Counted from the first letter of the stretch, positions 4,490-22,198 are shown. The stretch: 64,000 nucleotides of DNA from Azolla caroliniana (GCA_043228905.1 JBHGNT010000005.1:17360001-17424000), one strand, 5' to 3'. The notes: generated by a model not told the origin, from the letters alone. Made by a program: numbers and translations.

Positions 4490-5570
4490 CACGCCTTTTA
4501 CGACTATGCTTTTGGAATTGCAATGGATACCCATAGAATGTGGGATTTGGCATAGAGGAGTTCACTGATGACTCGGATATCACACTTCTTGTTGAAACAT
4601 GGGAGCATGATACTCAAAGGATTCAAGATTTAGGAAACTATAATGTACACTCTTTGATATAGAAGAAAAATCCAAGACAAAGAAGAGGACAAGGAGGGGT
4701 GACATGTTTGATTAAGAAGAAAATAGAGAAATATGTGTCAATCATAAAAAATGATGAAAATAAATGCTACATATGGCTCAAAATAGAAACACCTAATGAT
4801 TTGCCCACTTTTGTAGTTGGATGTTACATTCCTCATCAAGATTCTAACTTTTATGCTTGTTTGGATAAAGATCAACCGTTTGCCAATCTAGAAGATGCTA
4901 TTGCTTATTTCAAATCCAAAGGGGAAGTTATTGTCTTTGGTGACATGAATGCTCGTACAAGAAGTTTCCAACTTGATTTACAAGAATCTTTCATGCCACA
5001 TATCTCAAGGATGCAAGAGGATATGCAAATGTATAACCGCTCTTCTAGCGATGAAAAAGATCCGGACCAATTTGGGAAGTTACTCCTACAATTGTGCAAT
5101 AGTACCGGATTGCTTATTGCAAATGGTATTTCCTTATGGCCCAACACTAATGGTTTTACATGTAGAAAACACAACGGAAATAGTGTGATTGACTATGTGC
5201 TACTTTTTGAAGGTATTTTGGATCGTATACATAAATTCTCACTTGGTGAATGGACACCGGAATCCGATCATAGGCCTTTATGTATTGATCTCAAATGTGT
5301 GCATAGGTTTGATTGTGAGAAGGCTATTGAAGATAATAAACAACTGCACTTGAGCATGAACCTTAAGCGAGCACCCATGTATTCCAAGATGGTTGAGGAT
5401 ATGTTACAAATGACAAAGATACAACATGGTGCCACACTAGAATGCAAATGGGAAGCTTTCAAGAAAGTCATTCTCTCATGTACAAACAAATGTTTTTCGA
5501 CCAACCGCACATCTTGGAAATGCACCAAGAAACTTAGGAAAAAATGGTTTGATAAAGAATGTCGTGAAGC
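4490..5570 (+). pseudogene. LINE ORF2 5' part: APE endonuclease
   Basis: FWNCNG, VETW, GGVTCLIK, GDMNART, IDYVL and SDHRPL motifs, with in-frame stops upstream of 4699. Confidence 0.85.
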
Positions 5571-10130: not shown

Positions 10131-10714
10131 GTGTGGTCCCGTTTTAATAATACTCTATATTGGTGTTTTAATAATACTTTATTGGTGTCTAATAACTTAA
10201 GTTATCCCAATGATCTTTAATATGTTCTAAAAACTTTGATTAGGTTTAAATACTTTTGATATCTTCAACAAGCTACACTCCCCTAACCCCCACCCACGCC
10301 CTCACTTTTCTATTCTTCTAAAACTATATCACTACTTATGTTTAGACATACAAATAAGATGGGTGAAAGCATGCGAGTGGAAACAATTAGCTATGTCCTT
10401 GACATAGCTAATTAGCTATGCAAAAAGCTACCATTGATAAATAGTCATTTTAGTAAAAAGCCATCATTAATAAATTAAGTATGCAAAAAACTACCATTGA
10501 AAATACTAGAGTGTTTTAATTACATATGTAAATGAGTGCCATAAATGTGTAACATAAATTGATGTGTGCACCATAAATGTGTACCATAAATTATATATCG
10601 AATTCCTAGGTCCATTATGCATGATCCTTTGCCACATCACGTAGGCCATCTCTAGTTGAGTACTGTGGGTTAGTTGCTACCACTGTTGCTAAACCCTATC
10701 GAGTCCACCTACCG

Positions 10715-11480
10715 CCACTCTACACTGAGGGGCCGCTACTGTGCGTTCCAAGCATCATCAAAGAGCTGCTCAATCTGACGGGGTTCTCTTCTCTGTGACA
10801 CTCTACACTCAGGGGCCACTACTGTGCATTCCAAGCATCATCAAAGAGCTGTTCAATCTGAGGGGGTTCTCTTCTCTGTGCCACTCTACACTCAGGGGCC
10901 ATTACTGTGCGTTCCAAGCATCATCAAAGAGTTGTTCAATCTGAGGGGGTTCTCTTCTCTGTGCCACTCTACACTCAGGGGCCGTTGCTGTGCGTTCCAA
11001 GCATCATCAAAGAGCTGTTCAATCTGACGGGGTTCTCTTCTCTTTGCCACTCTACACTCAGGGGTTGCTACTGTGCGTTCCAAGCATAATCAAAGAGCTA
11101 TTCAATCTGACGGGGTTCTCTTCTCTTTTCCACTCTCACTCAGGGGCCGCTACTGTGCGTTTCAAGCATCATTGGTAACTGTTCAATCTGACGGGGTTCT
11201 CTTCTCTTTTCCACTCTCACTCAGGGGCCGCTACTGTGCGTTTCAAGCATCATTGGTAACTGTTCAATCTGACGGGGTTCTCTTCTCTATGCCACTCTAT
11301 TCTCAAGTGCCTTCTATGTGCGTTTCAAGCATCATCGGTAACTGTTCAATCTGACGGGGTTCTCTCCTCCATTGCCATCATTCTATACTCAGTTGCCACT
11401 ACTGTCCAGTCCCGGATTGCTTCCACATTTCGATTTGACGGAATTCACTCATCCAACGGCAACATTCTACACTCAGTTGT
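10715..11480 (+). repeat. tandem repeat, 81-83-bp unit, about 8-9 copies decaying 3'
   Basis: The unit CCACTCTACACTCAGGGGCC...TTCAATCTGACGGGGTTCTCTTCTCT recurs at 83-bp spacing upstream of the transposase. Confidence 0.9.
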
Positions 11481-11700
11481 TGCCATTGGTCGGTCTTGGA
11501 TCGCCTCCTCAACTGTTGGATCCAACAGAGTGAAATCCTCTACTGTTCGGTCTTGGATTGCAATAACTTTTCTGTCTATTGATTATCTTGTGTATTGTTG
11601 TGTCTAATCTTGTGTATTGTGTGGAATATTTTTGTGTATTGTTGTTGCCCATAGCCATCTTTAATACTTGTTTTTTTTTATGGAAATTTAGGGTTTTAAC

Positions 11701-14700
11701 ATGTCTAGCCAAATGGAAGGGGAAGAAGGGTGTTTAGAATTACCCCTCAATGATCATAAGGATAGGGATGATGTTATCAGGACACAACAAGCCATACGAA
11801 ACTATTGGGCAGAAAAAAAAAGGAAACATCGTCAATTGTTGAAGGATACGAAAGCCACACTCAGTAAAGGTAAGGATAGTTTAGCTGAGAATGTAAGTAA
11901 TGCGACTACCATCATAGAGAGAAAGGTTGTAGACTATTTCAATGTTCAAACCAAGCACATCAGCAATGAAGAAAAGAAGGTAGTACTTTATGGAATATGT
12001 AATGATCCATCGATAAAGGACTTAGTTGATTGTGATGGTCTTAATGCAAACATATCATCTATTTTAGTAAATAATCTTCGTAATAGTTTCGTATCCATGA
12101 GCAGGTCAGAAGATGATCTTGTCTTAAAAAGGTCTAGTCTAATGATGTTACTTAATAGTGATGTTGACGATATAAACATCAGTGAGCTATCTAAGGTAAT
12201 TGGTGTTAGTAGAAAAACAGTGTACAATACAATGAACCGTATAATTTCCTCGGGTGAAGGAACTAGTCTACTAAAGCTAACTACAAGATGTAAGCCAATG
12301 ACACCCATAACATTTGAAATCAAGGATGTAATCACAATGTTTTGGACTAATGAGAGTAGGGTTTCACCCAATAAAAAGGATTTATGCAGGAAACGTGTTG
12401 GAAGAAATCAATACGAGGAGCATCCCATTCATCTTCTTGATGTACCTCAGGTATTTACATTTATCTCAACATTTGTTTTGACTCTACTCGGAAAGTTAAT
12501 TAGCTCAGTTAGCAGAAAAGCTAATTAGCTTATCAGTTACATTTACCTCAGTTAACTACTAGGATCGCTACTACATAGGTAACTAGCTACTCTCAATAGT
12601 TACTACCATGATAGCTAATTAGCTATTCTCAATAGCTAATTTAGGTACTACCAGATAATTAGCTGTACTACTAGCTAGTTAGCTATCATGGTAGCTAGTT
12701 AGCTATTTCGTTATTACCAGCTAATTAGCTACTAGGAAAGCTAATTAGCTACCATGATAGCTAATTAGCTACTATGATAGCTACTACATAGGTAACTGGC
12801 TACTCTCAATAGCTACTACCATGATAGCTAATTAGTTAGGATAGCTAATTAGCCACCATTATAGCTAATTAGCTACTAGACCAGCTAATTAGCTACCATG
12901 ATAGCTAATTAGTTACTAGGACAGTTAATTAGCCACCGTGATAGCTAATTAGCTACCATGATAGCTAATTAGCTACTAGAGCAGCTAATTAGCTACCATG
13001 ATAGCTAATTAGCTACTAGGACAACTAATTAGCTACTAGGACAGCTAATTAGCTACCATGATAGCTAATTAGCTACTACGACAGCTAATTAGCTACCATG
13101 ATAGCTAATTAGCTACTAGAATAGCTAATTAGCTACTAGAATAGCTAATTAGCTACCATGATAGCTAATTAGCTACTACGATAGCTAATTAGCTACCATG
13201 ATAGCTAATTAGTTACTAGGAAAGCTAATTAGCCACCATGATAGCTAATTAGCTACTAGACAAGCTAATTAGCTACCATGATAGCTAATTAGTTACTAGG
13301 AAAGCTAATTAGCCACCATGATAGCTAATTAGCTACCATGATAGCTAATTAGTTACTAGGAAAGCTAATTAGCCACCATGATAGCTAATTAGCTACTAGA
13401 GCAGCTAATTAGCTACTACGACAGCTAATTAGCTACTAGGATAGCTAATTAGCTACTAGAATAGCTAATTAGCTACTAGAATAGCTAATTAGCTACCATG
13501 ATAGCTAATTAGCTACTACGACAACTAATTAGCTACCATGATAGCTAATTAGCTACTAGGACAACCAATTAGCTACTAGGACAGCTAATTAGCTACTAGG
13601 ATAGTTACCTAGTTACGAGAATAACTAATTCCCCTTTATTACGCAGGTCGATTTATTTATTAGGTTCAAACGAATGCATCCAACTATCAAAGTTCAACTA
13701 CGAACATTCGAGTCTCTTAAGCCACACTTTGTGAGACGCTTAAAGGATCGATACACATGTTGTTGCATTTACCACGTACAGATGGGTTTTCTGAAGGACT
13801 CTGTTAATCTACTACGTCACCATAGCGCATCCCTAACTAATACAGTTTGCACATGTGGGTGCCCAATCTGTCGATCAAGCCCGCAAGAGGAGTGTAAATC
13901 ATCTGAGCACGTTATCTCTTCCATGAGTTATTTATTAGATTCAATATTGTGTCCGAGAGAATCTGACGCTATCTTCCATATTCATAAATGTGTCATGGGT
14001 TTATGTCAAGATTGTGGCCCTACTAGATTTAGGTGGTGTCCAAATGAATTGAGTAGTGAAATATTGATCTCTGTGAAGTTATTTGAGTCAGTGAACACCA
14101 ATTTCGAAGGAAAGGTGTGTAAAAGAAAGGATCTAGTTTGGAAGATGCTTAAACCAAGGGATTTGGTGTCTCTGTTTGTAGTATCTCTAGGAAAGTTCAT
14201 TAAACACAACTTCATTTATTCATGGCAGGCCCATCAGTTTAAGACTTGCATATCTGATTTCCCAAATGATGTAGTAGTCTCAGTAGTAGATTTCGCAGAG
14301 AATTATACTTTCAAGCAGCAGAATGAAATTCAATCTATGCATTGGTGTTCAGTTCAGGTAACCATTTTTGTGCACATAACATATTTTCGAGTTTCAGGTG
14401 ATGTTAAAAAAGTAATTCATTTCTTTATTTCCGATGATAAGAAGCATGATACCTTGTTCGTCCAACACTGTTTTAAGTTACATTGGCAGTGGTTATTAGC
14501 TCAACGTTTGGAGCTTACTCAACATTGGGTCTGGTCTGACGGAGCTGCGTCACAATTCAAGGCTCGACGTCCATTTTATTTTGTGGGGAGGTATCCTGCT
14601 ATAACAGGTTTGGAGATGAGATGGAATTTTTTTGGGTCTGGCCATGGTAAAGGTGAACATGATGGTGCAGGGGCTGTTATAAAGCGGGCACTTACCCATG

Positions 14701-15488
14701 AACAACTAAAGACAAATGGTGTGCACATGAATTGTGCATCACATGTAGTTGAATTTTTAAGAACAAATATGTCGACGAGTGCCACAGGTGTTTATTCCTC
14801 GCAAGTTCGAGATATCAAACGTGAATTTTGGGAAGTGAAGATAGATGAAGTAAATAGGGAGAAGACCTGGGAGTGCCAAGGAATTCCCGAATTGCGATCT
14901 CTGCATGCTGTTCGCGGTTATTCCAGGTTGGATGGTCATTGTATTGCGGTTAGAGAATTGACTTGTTTTTGCTTCCATTGTGTGCAGGGAAATTGGAGAT
15001 ATTGTCTAAACAAAGCATACATTCAGAATTGGGAGTATCACACTCTGAATGATAAGGAAGCAGTTGATGGAGAAACAGGGCAGAATGCTGACTTCACATA
15101 TGAGGGACTTGGAGATACTTTGAGTGATGTCCTGAACATTGGGGATAACTTCGCTGTAAATGCTGAAGAAGGCAATTCAGAGGGTGCTGATTTCTATATA
15201 TTAAAGTGCACGGTTAGTAAACAGTGTGCAAGGGAGAATATTGTAGATGCATGGGGAAATTTTGTATCTGCCGGGACATTCTACATCGAAGGCATTTTTT
15301 ATGCAAAACTAGATGACTACGAATATGTGTACAGGCTGTTAGAAGACAAACCAGCGGCGTATATGTACTCTCATTTGGTCAGATGCATCAACGTCCCAAT
15401 GTCAGAATACAATAGCTGCTCCGGTTTATACACTGTTGGTGCTAATGTGTATGAATGTATTTACAATAGTATGCCATGGAATTTGTAG
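11701..15488 (+). CDS. Sola2-like transposase, 2 exons (11701-12450, 13647-15488), about 863 aa
   Basis: CAG|GTATTT donor and TTATTACGCAG|GTC acceptor join in phase 0 (DVPQ-VDLFIRFKRMHP). Cys-rich region, then putative DDD triad DFAENY / SDGAASQFK / HGKGEHDG. No stops. Confidence 0.82.
12520..13630. repeat. array of palindromic AGCTAATTAGCT (about 21-bp period) filling the transposase intron
   Basis: Dozens of TAGCTAATTAGCTA copies with ACCATGAT or ACTAGGAC linkers. Confidence 0.95.
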
Positions 15489-15960
15489 CTACAAGTAGCA
15501 CTTACCATGTTCTCTTGTAAAACAAACATGTATTTCGCGAAAACAGATCAATAAATTCGTTTGGAATCAATTTCTTGTATACAGTCTGCTTTCTGTGCTT
15601 CTTTCTCAATAAAATCATGTCTTTTTTGTTAAGTTTTAAGTTATAAGTTATAGCGAAATAGTCATCAGTAGCTAATTAGCTGTACAAATGCAGCTAATTA
15701 GCTGTACAAATGTATTTACAATAGTATGCCATGGGATTTGTAGCTACAAGTAGCACTTACCATGTTCTCTTGTAAAACAAACATGTATTTCGCGAAAACA
15801 GATCAATAAATTCGTTTGGAATCAATTTCTTGTATACAGTCTGCTTTCTGTGCTTCTTTCTCAATAAAATCATGTCTTTTTTGTTAAGTTTTAAGTTATA
15901 AGTTATAGCGAAATAGTCATCAGTAGCTAATTAGCTGTACAAATGCAGCTAATTAGCTGT
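15454..15960 (+). repeat. 255-bp tandem duplication of the transposase last codons and 3' UTR
   Basis: AATGTATTTACAATAGTATGCCATGG... begins at 15454 and again at 15709. Confidence 0.9.
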
Positions 15961-16090
15961 CAATAGCTAAATAGTCATCAATAGAATGAAATCAACAATC
16001 TGCAACATATTCCTCAAATTACACAGTAGATAAGTACAGTGGGAACAAGTAATTAAATTCTTCATTGAATAATGTCATCTCTTTACATAT

Positions 16091-17145
16091 TTATAAATTA
16101 CCATTGGAAATGTCTACAAATCTCCTATAAACAGCTAAGCTCTTGCTAGTCAGTGGAACGAGTCTACATATATTATCCGCATATTGAGCTCGGTATGGAG
16201 TCCACAACCATGCACCTAGTTGGCAGCTCACTGTTTGCACCAGGTACTGTTCAGGCATTTCCTCGGGTAGAATGAGACAGCATCTCCGAATATTGAAGTA
16301 GTGTCGGAAATGTTCTGTATCCAAAATCAATGTATTGTCAGCATTATATTCAGGCCAAGTAGCCCAAAAATCAGAAAGCCTCTTGAATCTTGCAGCTTCC
16401 ATCTGCTCACAATTTTCTCGTGCCCATTGACCTTTAAAACGACTTCGCCATTTTGGGAAGAATCTTGCCAAACACTTCCACACATCTGATTTTGGTTTTT
16501 CACTCCAAATAAACAAATCGAAGTACTCCACAGCCCACTCTAGAAACTGATTTGCGTCCCTCCTTGGCTGCATATATCTCACACTCATCAAGACTTTATG
16601 AAGCTCCAAGATCAAGGCTCTTCGCTCGACTTCTAGTGGTTTAGGTTTCCATTCCTGAAACTGAGCCGCTGTTACACCATTTTCTGGTAGGATACGATCA
16701 ATCTCAATCAGCTCAGGTTCGGCTGACACAACTGGTGTCCTTTTCCTCTTTAAACCCCTAGTCGACTGTGTTGGGCCTAGCTTCACATTCTGGTGCTCTT
16801 GTTTTGTCGACTTAGTTATCAATCCTTGGATTACCTCAGTGCATGTAGCTACTGTTCTGCTCGATATCAGTCCACTGGTATCACATGCTGCATCTACCTG
16901 CAACACCAAGTCATCCGTGCTACATGTTGCATCTACCTGCAACACCAAGTCATCCGTGCTACATGCTGCATCTACCTGCAACACCAAGTCATCCGCGCTA
17001 CATGCTTGATCAACTTGTGTGACCAGATCACTTGTGTCAGTTGCTACATCTACTTTCAAGATGGGGCCCTTTAAACATGCCGCAACATCAACAGTATCCA
17101 CACTGCCATTGGCCTTACGAGCAATAGAATCAAACCCTTTAGACT
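16091..17145 (-). CDS. FCP1/NIF-like HAD phosphatase-fold protein, catalytic motif degenerate; 5' exon unresolved
   Basis: ALILELHKVL...PR...FLEWAVEYFDLFIWS...W.RENC...KRLSDFW...YNADNTLILDT follows the FCP1-homology layout. 13-aa repeats lie upstream. Strong acceptor TTGCAG| at 17146. Confidence 0.6.
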
Positions 17146-17394
17146 CTGCAACATCAGAAAACACCAACATATTCACACTCACAAAGTAACTACTAGTCTC
17201 ACAAAACAATATCCTGAACATCAAAGAGTTTCAGTCATAGAACAACACTCTTCAAATTATCTTGGAAAAACATCATAGAGTTCCATTACATAATGTGGAT
17301 CAAGCAACAACCAATCTGAGGTTTTACTTGTCCAACAGGATAGTAAAACTTCATAAAACCCTAGCAAAATCCCTAAGCTAACAATCATATCCAA

Positions 17395-20300
17395 CTAAAC
17401 AGTATTTCGCTCCACTACGTCTGGGCCCCTTGACCGAGTAACTGGTCTTGTTCCCGATCGTGGCCCCTTCTTCAGCCTTTTTCTGGTTGGTTCCCCATTT
17501 AGCCTTGCTTCTAGGACCCAATGCGCAAGTGTGTCCTCCTCCGACAACCTTCCCATCGCCTCAGCAGCTAATTGCACATCAGCCGTTTCTTGAACTAGCT
17601 TTTCAAGTACAGAGGGATTTGTTTGGACATTTTCAGTAGTTGGGCTCGGTGGGGTGGAATCAAGGTCTTGAGACTCGAAGAAATGTTGCATCAAGTGTTC
17701 ATAAACACTGTTGTTGTGAACCTCAGTTTTACATGTTGTTTCCACTATTTCATGGCATTTCACATCGTTGCCTAATTCAGTACACTGTTCCAAAAGAATA
17801 GGGTGCAGCTGATCTGAAGGAGATGTGATAGCAGGACTCTTACTTTCAGCCACATTGGCAGTAGTATCCTCATCTGTTGCAGCATCATCAGCACCAGACA
17901 CATCATGTGCCGTCCTTAATCCACAAGATTCTACAATAACATGACAGTTATTTAGGATAGCTAATTAGCTACTTTACTAAACTATGGTAGAAGCTAGGAT
18001 AGCTAATTAGCTAGTACGATAGCTAATTAGCTAGTATGATAGCTAATTAGGTACTTTACTCAACTATGGTAGTAGTTAGGATAGCTAATTAGGTACTTTA
18101 CTCAACTATGGTAGTAGTTAGGATAGCTAATTAGGTACTTTACTCAACTATGGTAGTAGTTAGGATAGCTTATTAGCTACTAGGACAGCTAATTAGCTGC
18201 CAGTAGCTAATTAGCTACTAGGATAGCTAATTAGCTGCCAGTAGCTAATTAGCTACTAGGATAGCTAATTAGCTGCCAGTAGCTAATTAGCTACTAGGAT
18301 AGCTTATTAGCTACTTTACACAACTATGGCAGTAGCTACTAGGATAGCTAATTCGCTAGTAGGATAGCTAATTAGTTGCCAGCAGCTAATTAGCTAGTAG
18401 GATAGCTAATTAGCTACTAGGATAGCTAATTAGTTGCCAGTAGCTAATTAGCTAGTAGGATAGCTAATTAGGTACTTTACTCAACTATGGTAGTAGCTAA
18501 TTAGCTAGTAGGATAGCTAATTAGGTACTTTACTCAACTATGGTAGTAGCTAATTAGCTAGTAGGATAGCTAATTAGCTACTAGGATAGCTAATTAGCTG
18601 CTAGTAGCTAATTAGCTACTAGGATAGCTTATTAGCTACTTTACACAACTATGGCAGTAGCTAATTAGTTACTAGGATAGCTAATTAGTTGCCAGTGGCT
18701 AATTAGCTAGTAGGATACCTAATTAGCTTTTTTACACAACTATAGTACTAGCTAATTAGCTAGTACCATAGCTAATTACCTACTAGGATAGCTAATTAGC
18801 TAGTAGGATAGCTTATTAGCTACTTTACACAACTATAGTAGTAGCTAGGATAGCTAATTAGCTACTATGGTAGCTAATTAGCTACTTTACTCAACTATGG
18901 TAGTAGCTAGGATAGCTAATTAGCTACTTTACTAACTATGGTAGTAGCTAGGATAGCTAATTAGCTACTTTACTAACTATGGTGGTAGCTAGGATAGCTA
19001 ATTAGCTACAATGAAAGCTAATTAGCTACTTTCTCAACTATGTAGTAGCTAGGATAGCTTATTAGCTACTAGGACAGCTAATTAGCTGCCAGTAGCTAAT
19101 TAGCTACTAGGATAGCTTATTAGCTACTTTACACAACTATGTCAGTAGCTAATTAGCTACTATGATAGCTAATTAGCTAGTAGGATAGCTAATTAGTTGC
19201 CAGTAGCTAATTAGCTAGTAGGATAGCTAATTAGCTTTTTTACACAACTATGGTACTAGCTAATTAGCTAGTACCATAGCTAACTAGCTACTAGGATAGC
19301 TTATTAGCTACTTTACACAACTATGTCAGTAGCTAATTAGCTACTATGATAGCTAATTAGCTAGTAGGATAGCTAATTAGCTAGTAGGATAGCTAATTAG
19401 TTGCCAGTAGCTAATTAGCTAGTAGGATAGCTAATTAGCTTTTTTACACAACTATGGTACTAGCTAATTAGCTAGTACCATAGCTAACTAGCTACTAGGA
19501 TAGCTTATTAGCTACTTTACACAACTATGGCAGTAGCTAATTAGTTACTAGGATAGCTAATTAGTTGCCAGTGGCTAATTAGCTAGTAGGATAGCTATTT
19601 AGCTTTTTTACACAACTATGGTACTAGCTAATTAGCTAGTACCATAGCTAATTAGCTACTAGGATAGCTAATTAGCTAGTAGCTCATTAGCTGCCAGTAG
19701 CTAATTAGCTAGTAGGATAGCTAATTAGAAAAGACTAAGCTTATTAGCTACAGTATGGTATACCTGTTTGTTTTCTCCACTCATTTGGTAGAGTTGTACT
19801 GCAATCTCCCAAACAGAATGTAGCAATTCGACAGGCATGTTGAAAACAAAGTAGATGGTATGTGTGGTTGCATGGTTGTAGGTGAACCAACAAAGACGCA
19901 GTTTTGTCCTCCACACCTAACCCGCAAGCGATGCAACGTGCTTGAACTGTCAATAAATCATTTTCTGGTTCTACTTCATTTGGTAAGGGAGCAAGAATGT
20001 TCAGGTCCAAATCCTGTCTGGTCCTTACCATTCCCTCCACAAAATGTAGCTTCTTCTTAAGGCAGCTAACTACCTGTTCTTGATGAATGTATTGTTCCTT
20101 CAACGCAACAGAGAAATTTACCGATTAATTATTCTTGTTGTTGAAAGATACACCAACTTTGCTCAGGAATCGTTAACTTACTTGAAGCTTATCCAAATTG
20201 TAATCTGCAACAGTATTTACACCTAGAAGGTCCAGGTTCATTGAAAGAACCTGGATCTCTATTTGCAGTTCTATTTTACGTTGGGGATCCAGTGGCCCCT

Positions 20301-21643
20301 CTAATTCAAGCTCCTGTTGCGCAACCTATTCCAGATAATGCTTGATTAGCACATTTTACCCGTTATTTATAACACAATCACATACCAGCAAAACAATAGT
20401 TACCTGAATCTTATTTCTAATTGTTGTAACAGCAGAAGTAACTTTGCTCTCCATTGCAGAAGCCATTGTGGCTTTCTCTAAATCAGTCTTAAAAATGCCA
20501 ATGTCTCACAGGCTTCATGGACATTTTTTAGCATATAGCTAACCAATGTCTCACCTGTATCATCGACATTGGCTTTCCTTGGGTGTCGGTGTGGTGTATG
20601 CCCCCGGTCTTGCTGGGAGTCGGCAGTTGCATCAACAGCTGCCATGCTCCAAAATCTGTCTATTTTTTGTGCCAAGGTCCCCATCTTTCGGCATCTTTTT
20701 ACCGATGCCTCACCATAGACTGCCCAAGCTACCCTATACATTTCAGGGTCTCTAGATTCCTTCGCTGTTTTGCAGTACTCATATGCAAATGCTCTAGCAA
20801 ATGAAACTGACAACTCATTGTTGACTGGGATCTCCTGATGAACTTTCTGGTGCAGTCTCATGCAGTCATCGTACAAGTCGGCTCGTACATGCTTCAGCTT
20901 GACCTTGCCTTTGACTCTAGGCACTGTATATACTGTCATCCAGTCTATATCACTAATCAATTTATCACTTAGGACAGCAGGGTCAACACCCTCGAGTGAC
21001 AGACCATAGGTGTTGTGGAAGTCCTCCTTTGTCTCGCAAAATTTTGCGAAGTTTAGCACTCTCGTATACGGAGGAACGAGCCATCTGAAATATCATTTCA
21101 GAAATCAGAAATAGTGCAAAATCAGAATATGTGAGAATCAAAAACCCCAATCAACAACAACAAAAATGGTGCAAAATCTTTAACTTAGCAAATCAGAAAC
21201 CCTAATCATAATTTGTATTCAGAAATTTGAAATCAGAAACCCTAATCAAAATCTGTAATCAGAAGTTTGAAATCAGAAACCCTAATCAAAATCTGTAATC
21301 AGAAGTTTGTAACCAGAAACCTTATTCAGAAATTCTAATCAGAAATTTATAATCAAAAACCCTAATCAGAAATTTCAATCAGAAACCCTAATAAAAAATT
21401 TCAATCACAAACCCTAATCAGAAATCCTAAGCAGAAATTTATAAACAAAAACCCTATTCAGAAATTCTAATTTGTAATCAAAATTTGTAACCAGAAACCC
21501 TATTCAGAAATTCTAATCAGAAATTTATAATCAAAAACCCTAATCAGAAATTTCAATCACAAACCCTAATCACTAAAGACATGATTAAACACAAAAAAAG
21601 TAATATAAACACACCTGTTGCTACTCCCCGATTTGCGAGACAT
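17395..21643 (-). CDS. six-exon gene, about 548 aa: unknown N-domain, coiled coil, RING-like finger, acidic tail and basic NLS-like end
   Basis: Exons 21643-21615, 21084-20555, 20477-20404, 20325-20182, 20097-19764 and 17930-17395. All introns are GT-AG and phase-compatible (1647 nt total). RING-like CIAC...PCNH..H..C...C...C. Confidence 0.68.
17955..19750. repeat. second AGCTAATTAGCT palindrome array filling intron 19763-17931
   Basis: About 1.8 kb of TAGCTAATTAGCT with GGA / CTTTACACAACTATGG linkers. Confidence 0.95.
21190..21575. repeat. AAACCCTAATCAG (telo-box-like) degenerate repeats in predicted intron 1 of the RING-like gene
   Basis: About a dozen AAACCCTA(A/T)TC motifs. Confidence 0.8.
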
Positions 21644-22198
21644 CCTTGTATGGGACTCCAAGGACTTCGCCCTATTCGATTTTGGGGAAATATGAATCGG
21701 CACCAAAGTTCAGACAGTAGTCAAAAAGAAAAAACAAATGTTTGGGGTTTCTGTAACTGAAACATACCTAGACGATGATCGAGCGGGTTCTGTGTTGTAG
21801 CTCTCAATCTGCAATGTCGATTTTTTGCTGTTGCGGGAGCTACACGTCTGCGTTCGTGCTCTGAGTACTCCATCTGCGTTCAAAATCAGACTTAGGCTAA
21901 ACAGGAAATTGATGACATTGAAGTCGACCTTAGATGATGGTGATATTCCCCAAGTTCCACTACGTCTGAAACAAAAGTTCAAATATTTGAGTTTTTTCAT
22001 AAATTAGTTTTTCAAATATTTGATTTTCCCACAAGAAAGACTAGCTAAACAAATAGCTAATTAGCTATGGCCATTTTAGTAGCTAATTAGCTATAATAGT
22101 GTTTCCACTCGCATGCTTTTACCCAGATCTAAACTTGAGTCCACCCCAAACAACCCCCGATGAAGTGCCGCACACTTTAAGCAATCTTTAAAAAAAAA

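Follow-up and report, generated by a model that had tools for sequence, protein, structure and literature searches.

A two-gene, probably Sola2-type DNA transposon of Azolla caroliniana carries arrays of its own subterminal palindrome in one predicted intron of each gene

Here we describe a mobile element in a 64,000-nt stretch of DNA from the fern Azolla caroliniana, hereafter the window, within which every coordinate is counted. Reading of this 64-kb sequence reveals, at 10361-22124, a complete 11.8-kb cut-and-paste transposon with two convergent genes: gene A, on the plus strand, encodes the transposase, and gene B lies on the minus strand. A short palindrome found beside both terminal inverted repeats (TIRs) of this element also fills, as phased arrays, one predicted intron in each gene. 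The features on which the analysis turns are the following.

10357-10360, unstranded: left target site duplication (TSD), AGAT, the same four bases standing beside the right end
10361-10385, plus strand: left TIR of 25 bp, GGGTGAAAGCATGCGAGTGGAAACA
10385-10394, unstranded: half-site AATTAGCTAT adjoining the left TIR, from direct sequence reading
10404-10419, unstranded: left subterminal 16-bp palindrome ATAGCTAATTAGCTAT, from a motif search
11701-12450, plus strand: transposase exon 1, 250 codons, open frame, with a weak helix-turn-helix (HTH) at residues 147-186
12451-13646, plus strand: intron A, an array of 20-bp units, GT..AG, phase 0, CAG/GTATTT...CGCAG/GTC
13647-15488, plus strand: transposase exon 2, 613 codons and stop, open frame, with the catalytic motifs VDFAENY, WSDGAASQFK and GHGKGEHDG
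15454-15960, unstranded: 255-bp tandem duplication (99% identical) with two palindrome pairs, from a repeat search
17931-19763, minus strand: intron B, with its array at 17952-19728, GT..AG, phase 1, ACAG/GTATAC...TTGTAG/AAT
22053-22068, unstranded: right subterminal 16-bp palindrome ATAGCTAATTAGCTAT, from a motif search
22079-22094, unstranded: second right subterminal site GTAGCTAATTAGCTAT, a 15/16 match to the 16-bp palindrome, from a motif search
22100-22124, minus strand: right TIR, with 24 of 25 bases as in the left TIR
22125-22128, unstranded: right TSD, AGAT, a perfect 4-bp match to the left

The 25-bp TIRs (GGGTRAAAGCATGCGAGTGGAAACA), identical at 24 of 25 positions, give only two matches in 64 kb, in inverted orientation, where none is expected. 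The transposase reading frame looks intact in this copy, and the very high word depth over the whole stretch in the DNA sequencing run X7 (from contig depths) suggests that the element family is multi-copy. The exons were searched separately, not as joined spliced proteins; exon 2 has more than 120 homologues in ferns (Adiantum), conifers, mosses (Ceratodon), liverworts (Calypogeia) and some animals, none of them named, and matches no Pfam family. No Pfam model exists for Sola2-type transposases (PMC5751038).

With the transposase compared by eye, the element appears to be a two-gene Sola2-type DNA transposon. Sola2 (Bao et al. 2009, as cited in PMC4455052) is recognised by a 4-bp TSD, and the elements DFa-2 and PPa-1 have been described (PMC3627910). 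The window element has the 4-bp TSD and short (25-bp) TIRs, and further resembles Sola2 in a length of 10-15 kb, a second gene and the ordered motifs DF-EN, WSDGA--FK and HGK---D; its VDFAENY, WSDGAASQFK and GHGKGEHDG correspond, in a by-eye comparison only, to MDFKEN, WSDGAKHFK and HGKSDVD of Sola2_DFa-2. Unlike the described Sola2 elements, whose passengers are Fanzor proteins, it carries a second gene with RING-like and NIF parts, and the literature searched was found to describe neither a RING/NIF gene nor arrays of palindromes for Sola2.

The palindrome measures 12-16 bp: two TAGCTA hexamers flank an AT centre, and the core is TAATTA. The 64-kb window contains 80 exact copies of its 12-mer, AGCTAATTAGCT, against an expectation of 0, all of them within 10406-22092; when up to one mismatch is allowed the count rises to 126 sites, every one of them within the element. 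Exact copies are found once at the left end (10406), in addition to the half-site, twice at the right end (22055 and 22081), four times between the genes (15670, 15692, 15925 and 15947), 31 times in intron A and 42 times in intron B. The 16-bp palindromes sit 31-72 bp from both element ends.

The initial annotation, made from the sequence of the window, had delimited two introns at 12451-13646 and 19763-17931, described them as almost entirely palindrome, and noted the same motif beside both TIRs and between the convergent 3' ends. The intron coordinates proved exact. Their composition needs rewording, as the 12-mer covers only about 48% of each intron and it is the 20-bp unit (palindrome plus 8-bp spacer) that fills nearly all of it. 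The copies beside both TIRs were confirmed, those on the left being one full palindrome at 10404-10419 and the half-site. Between the 3' ends the motif is present at four sites and not just as a pair at 15670-15705, because the 255-bp tandem duplication doubled one pair.

Both introns have canonical GT..AG boundaries and their removal keeps the reading frame. The boundaries are conserved in two independent copies from other samples, L001 (for intron A) and L007, whose exons are 94-96% identical to the window; the intron B splice sites of L007 are identical to those of the window copy. For intron A, homology locates the junction directly. Residues 167-247 of exon 1 align to residues 8-90 of an annotated Ceratodon protein (P0040), in which the end of exon 1 corresponds to residue 93 and the first residue of exon 2 to residue 94, an exactly collinear junction. 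In a 942-aa uninterrupted open reading frame (ORF), P0057, the end of exon 1 corresponds to Q284 and residue 2 of exon 2 to residue 286. This ORF, about 30% identical to the transposase, lies on Logan contigs (L009, 1109-3937; L010, 791-3619), and comes either from a lineage lacking the intron or from the assembly of a transcript. When 15 N-terminal ORFs are aligned, 13 relatives are conserved precisely as far as ...HLLDxPQ, after which comes the V read from GT. The evidence from sequence and homology that intron A is spliceosomal is strong. For intron B, the array of the relative L003 directly follows a RING-like ORF, as intron B does, and an annotated Adiantum protein (P0152) joins the N-terminal and NIF parts of gene B in one model; P0152 and a second Adiantum protein, P0144, give no alignment to the exon that follows the array, the linker being too divergent to establish collinearity there. 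Among the sequencing runs searched, none recorded as RNA contains the stretch. Three runs from a related organism, presumed to be RNA, yield contigs that fall on exon stretches and almost never on the arrays; one of these contigs reads 11 nt into intron A. The possibility that the arrays are a separate inserted element was considered and rejected, as no TIRs or TSDs surround them and their boundaries are kept in other copies.

Within the introns, tandem arrays were delimited by TRF at 12719-13630 and 17952-19728, with additional copies of the motif in intron A from 12519, 12613 and 12645. With up to two mismatches, intron A holds 49 palindrome sites, and 41 of the 48 spacings between them are exactly 20 bp; 38 units at 12843-13602 stand in perfect phase with zero indels. 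Intron B holds 74 sites at the same threshold, spaced by 20 (39 times), 18 (12 times), 33 (10 times) or 42 bp (6 times). Over the 38 phase-defined units, the palindrome core departs from consensus at 3.1% of positions versus 21.4% for the spacer (p = 8e-16), and the six central bases of the palindrome are invariant. Two spacer classes form a higher-order repeat, and within the ACTAG class the figures are 2.7% for the core versus 15.3% for the spacer (p = 1.6e-6). Spacers of the form ACTAGGAx are common to both arrays and have the same plus orientation in each despite the convergence of the genes. CG density is 8.4 and 1.1 per kb in the arrays versus 16-24 per kb in exons.

Comparison with the near-identical copies indicates that the arrays are kept at the same boundaries while their unit number changes (for L001, this can be read for intron A only):

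Window copy: intron A 1196 bp; intron B 1833 bp; exact 12-mers 31 + 42, right end 2
L001: intron A 1000 bp; intron B not on the contig; exact 12-mers 15
L007: intron A 1130 bp; intron B 864 bp; exact 12-mers 20 + 24, right end 2

Variation in array length among copies, which the initial annotation had proposed to look for, is therefore present at 94-96% identity, intron B being 1833 bp in one copy and 864 bp in another. The full 255-bp duplication between the genes, which takes in the final 35 coding nt of the transposase gene and the 3' untranslated region (UTR), is not in L007 and is therefore probably specific to the window copy.

In more distant relatives, whose transposases are 31-52% identical, the layout is retained but the motif is another one (GGTAGCTACC, GTACCACCTG or AACTAGCATAC). 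In L003 (51% identity), which has the TIR GGGTATATGCATGAATAGGTGG and the TSD TCCA/TTCA (3/4 bases), the motif GGTAGCTACC occurs once 38 bp inside the left TIR, 11 times in intron A and 13 times in intron B, with near-copies beside the right TIR; the same motif is present in 11 copies in intron A of L004. L005 carries eight copies of GTACCACC(TG) in intron A, a sequence that also forms the inner part of its two TIRs (AGGTGGTAC). L008, from Adiantum nelumboides, uses a motif in one orientation, CTAGCATA, of which 8 copies lie in intron A, 6 between the genes and about 22 in intron B. Across the window element and its relatives the matrix of motif counts by locus is nearly diagonal, and in each of the three elements with located ends (the window element, L003 and L005) the motif agrees with those ends. 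Judged from these sequences, ends and introns are changing their motif in step across lineages. The tips of the TIRs (compared at 5116-5137 and 17521-17542 in L003 and at 1736-1764 in L005) are related among the same three elements, as GGGTnnAnGCATG...GG (GGGT..A.GCATG....GG), while the motif differs completely. This combination of conserved tips and a variable motif suggests two recognition layers, a conserved tip and a private subterminal code.

The candidate reader of such a code is the N-terminal region of the transposase, as Pfam searches of both genes found no other DNA-binding-like domain than its HTH. For residues 118-250 the predicted structure has a mean pLDDT (predicted local distance difference test) of 67.8, with three helices at 137-183 reaching 75-84 locally; the prediction for the whole of exon 1 (pLDDT 54.6) is unusable. 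HTH proteins dominate the list of fold matches, among them resolvases, Mu, TnsB, the SETMAR DNA-binding domain and engrailed, all within noise, and we therefore claim no specific HTH class. PF13551 is on record for two relatives of the transposase. The putative recognition helix reads SRKTVYNTMNRI in the window element, HRRNFYAA(R/K) in L003 and L004, HRRNLVAANCRL in L005 and TKHSLYRARSSV in L008; the helix hardly differs between L003 and L004, which have a common motif, and is different among lineages with different motifs, a pattern compatible with co-variation of helix and motif.

A motif that is restricted to the element, stands beside its ends, is phased and conserved in its core, and changes in step at ends and in introns presents the pattern expected of a binding site for an element-encoded protein. 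We consider it about an even call that the palindrome is such a lineage-specific recognition site, read most likely by the transposase HTH. The transposase N-terminus, putatively as a dimer, would bind the palindrome, and the copies just inside both TIRs would identify the element's own ends, with the TIR, conserved between lineages, probably serving the catalytic step. Slippage or unequal exchange may then have expanded the motif into phased 20-bp arrays in one intron per gene, which would be the only long transcribed non-coding stretches available. There the arrays could gather the element's protein onto the element's own copies, which might provide a landing pad for transposition, shield those copies from silencing, or both. 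The initial annotation had already raised the idea of a transposase binding site amplified into internal arrays; the comparative data strengthen this suggestion, with four further lineages carrying a motif of their own in the same intron or introns.

Several observations weigh against this reading. The HTH is only faintly recognisable: matches of exon 1 to the Pfam models HTH_11, HTH_29 and HTH_23 are all under their cut-offs, the N-terminus is modelled with only moderate confidence (pLDDT 67.8), and none of its fold matches rises above noise (Foldseek best E 0.76; VIA-align best Z 6.5, to TrpR). The covariation of helix and motif is confounded by phylogeny. The contrast between core and spacer arises partly from the existence of two spacer classes, and the spacer of the ACCATGAT class is conserved like the core. 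The intergenic palindrome sites are absent from the 94% identical copy L007. In L006, from the moss Ceratodon, the repeated motifs are non-palindromic 22-mers common to an intron and the 3' intergenic region, and the TIRs and ends of L006 and L008 were looked for and not found. Finally, no spliced joint appears in the contigs of the three runs guessed to be RNA, for which 12300-18290 was examined and the intron B donor lies outside that range.

The alternative that survives best is that the arrays are neutral minisatellites, which we regard as rather unlikely. A slippage-prone palindrome in the introns of the ancestor would have expanded, introns being tolerant of length, concerted evolution would have changed the unit from lineage to lineage, and the arrays would have no function, with their likeness to the subterminal sites due to common descent or occasional gene conversion. 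Near-identical copies do differ much in array length, higher-order repeats are typical of unequal exchange, and the intergenic sites are not conserved; unrelated tandem repeats in another intron of gene B and in the 5' region moreover suggest that this element accumulates repeats generally. Neutral turnover would, however, not be expected to make single subterminal sites track the arrays, and in the three lineages with located ends those sites carry the lineage's own motif. Nor does it readily account for introns A and B holding the same unit in every lineage with data, for strict 20-bp spacing over 38 units, or for a core that is overall about seven times better conserved than the spacer and invariant in its central six bases.

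An action at the level of RNA appears quite improbable. The intron RNAs, whether excised or retained, would form long imperfect hairpins or pair with one another, the resulting double-stranded RNA being processed by Dicer into small interfering RNAs that silence the family or act as a decoy. The two intron RNAs would be complementary because the arrays run in one direction on the DNA but belong to convergent genes, as the common plus orientation of the ACTAGGAx spacers illustrates, and the equivalent non-coding repeat regions of VANDAL elements are preferred targets of RNA-directed DNA methylation (PMC10398659). The RNA of intron A is predicted to fold at -428.5 kcal/mol versus -233.6 for shuffled sequences (z = -36.7), in agreement with the self-complementarity that the initial annotation had pointed out, yet self-complementarity is automatic for any palindromic array, and the folding energy is not evidence of function. 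Pairing of RNAs would in addition leave unexplained both the subterminal copies and the non-palindromic, one-orientation arrays of L008. Least probable, to the point of being very improbable, is that the palindrome is a site for a host transcription factor and the arrays intronic enhancers that direct both genes to particular tissues such as germline or meristem. In favour of this are the TAATTA core, which is of homeodomain type, the position of the arrays in transcribed introns that are internal or near the 5' end, and the telobox-like AAACCCTAA repeats of another intron, which suggest recruited cis-regulatory motifs. Against it, an enhancer role needs no copies beside both TIRs, and a single host factor would not follow related lineages to unrelated motifs (GTACCACCTG, AACTAGCATAC).

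Taking the palindrome again as a recognition site for an element-encoded protein, the functionally closest system, by analogy, appears to be VANDAL/VANC of Arabidopsis. VANC is a transposon protein that binds a 9-bp motif found in fast-changing tandem repeats in introns and in intergenic and terminal non-coding regions, and related VANDAL families carry different VANC target motifs (PMC5735166). As in VANDAL21 and VANDAL6, a family-specific motif is packed in tandem copies into non-coding regions of the element itself; as in VANDAL/VANC generally, these repeats gain and lose units fast and differ in motif between related families. In contrast to the Mutator-like VANDALs, the window element appears to be of Sola2 type and has a 4-bp TSD, its motif is a palindrome with 20-bp phasing in kilobase arrays, and its second gene encodes a RING-like protein with a probably inactive CTD-phosphatase-like domain and no homology to VANC. 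Binding and hypomethylation have been demonstrated for VANC; binding in the window element is a prediction. Since the element lies outside the VANDALs and encodes no homologue of VANC, any resemblance to the VANC system can at most be one of function.

Arrays of transposase-binding sites are known from Galileo, in which the sites of the THAP domain lie in tandem repeats (PMC3688188). There, as predicted here, a DNA-binding domain of the transposase recognises a subterminal site that is also tandemly repeated, and multiple sites have been proposed to confer specificity. The Galileo repeats differ in lying inside long TIRs and not in gene introns, and binding there was established by footprinting, in contrast to the predicted binding in the window element. 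Subterminal repeats bound by the transposase are familiar from En/Spm (the 12-bp motif of TnpA), Ac/Ds (AAACGG) and P elements. These elements and piggyBat share with the window element short motifs inside both TIRs, apart from the cleavage site, which give recognition of the ends there and would do so here; in the window element such a motif lies just inside both TIRs at 10404-10419, 22053-22068 and 22079-22094. To our knowledge, none of En/Spm, Ac/Ds, P and piggyBat has kilobase arrays of its motif in introns of its own genes. In piggyBat, extra subterminal sites are inhibitory and restrain activity (PMC11707139), which offers a precedent, by analogy, for the idea that internal arrays might act as a sink.

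A broader proposal, which we put forward tentatively and think unlikely in its full extent, is that Sola2-type transposons of ferns and bryophytes have independently evolved a system of self-recognition analogous to VANC, in which an element-encoded protein would be recruited to the phased kilobase arrays in the introns of both genes, motif and protein would co-evolve, and each lineage would serve only itself. The recruited protein could be the HTH transposase or a partner encoded by the gene with RING and pseudo-CTD-phosphatase parts, and its recruitment may keep the element's own copies transcribed or unsilenced, or mark them for transposition. Whatever the fate of that broader proposal, if the palindrome is a self-recognition site, VANDAL/VANC would no longer be the sole example of a transposon family arraying a private motif in its introns: an independent second one would exist in a different superfamily and in huge, transposon-rich fern genomes. 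This would suggest that private codes, each a DNA-binding protein with a fast-evolving target array, are a general means by which transposons act on no copies but their own.

The structure of gene B, apart from intron B, is as follows.

21615-21643, minus strand: first coding exon with ATG, in our own model, read from the sequence
21085-21614, minus strand: first intron, filled by a different, 40-bp repeat, in our own model
20478-21084, minus strand: N-terminal conserved exon, from tblastn with residues 137-295 of the L003 ORF and a GT-AG model
19764-20103, minus strand: RING-H2-like exon, 5' limit approximate, from a weak zf-RING_2 match
17395-17930, minus strand: exon downstream of intron B, frame open from 17930, with the ORF limit as its 3' limit
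16091-17224, minus strand: 3' part with an NIF/FCP1-like domain (PF03031, 30.2 bits versus a cut-off of 21.8), the limits being those of the ORF and not of an exon

The RING-H2-like exon is homologous to a 547-aa ORF of L003 and to Adiantum P0144, and the NIF part aligns to the C-terminus of Adiantum P0152. In Pfam searches, eight pieces of the gene from four loci gave weak RING and NIF matches only and no DNA-binding domain. The NIF/FCP1-like domain is without the catalytic DxDxT, which is replaced by ELHKV in the window element and by DMNGV in L003 (11904-13133, minus strand); the phosphatase-like domain of gene B is therefore probably inactive, a pseudo-phosphatase. Just upstream of this domain lies a coding repeat of 39 bp in 3.2 copies (16883-17006).

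Other repeats accompany the 5' portions of both genes. An 83-bp unit is repeated in tandem eight times (91% matches) at 10714-11369, in the stretch that leads from the left end to the start of the transposase and is likely a promoter or 5' UTR; it is unrelated to the palindrome. The 40-bp repeat of the first intron of gene B includes eight copies of AAACCCTAA, which resembles the telobox of plant telomeres, at 21190-21572, and one more stands at 11688-11696, 5 nt upstream of the transposase ATG. In total this sequence occurs 13 times in the window versus 0.6 expected, and its sense orientation in both genes is TTAGGGTTT.

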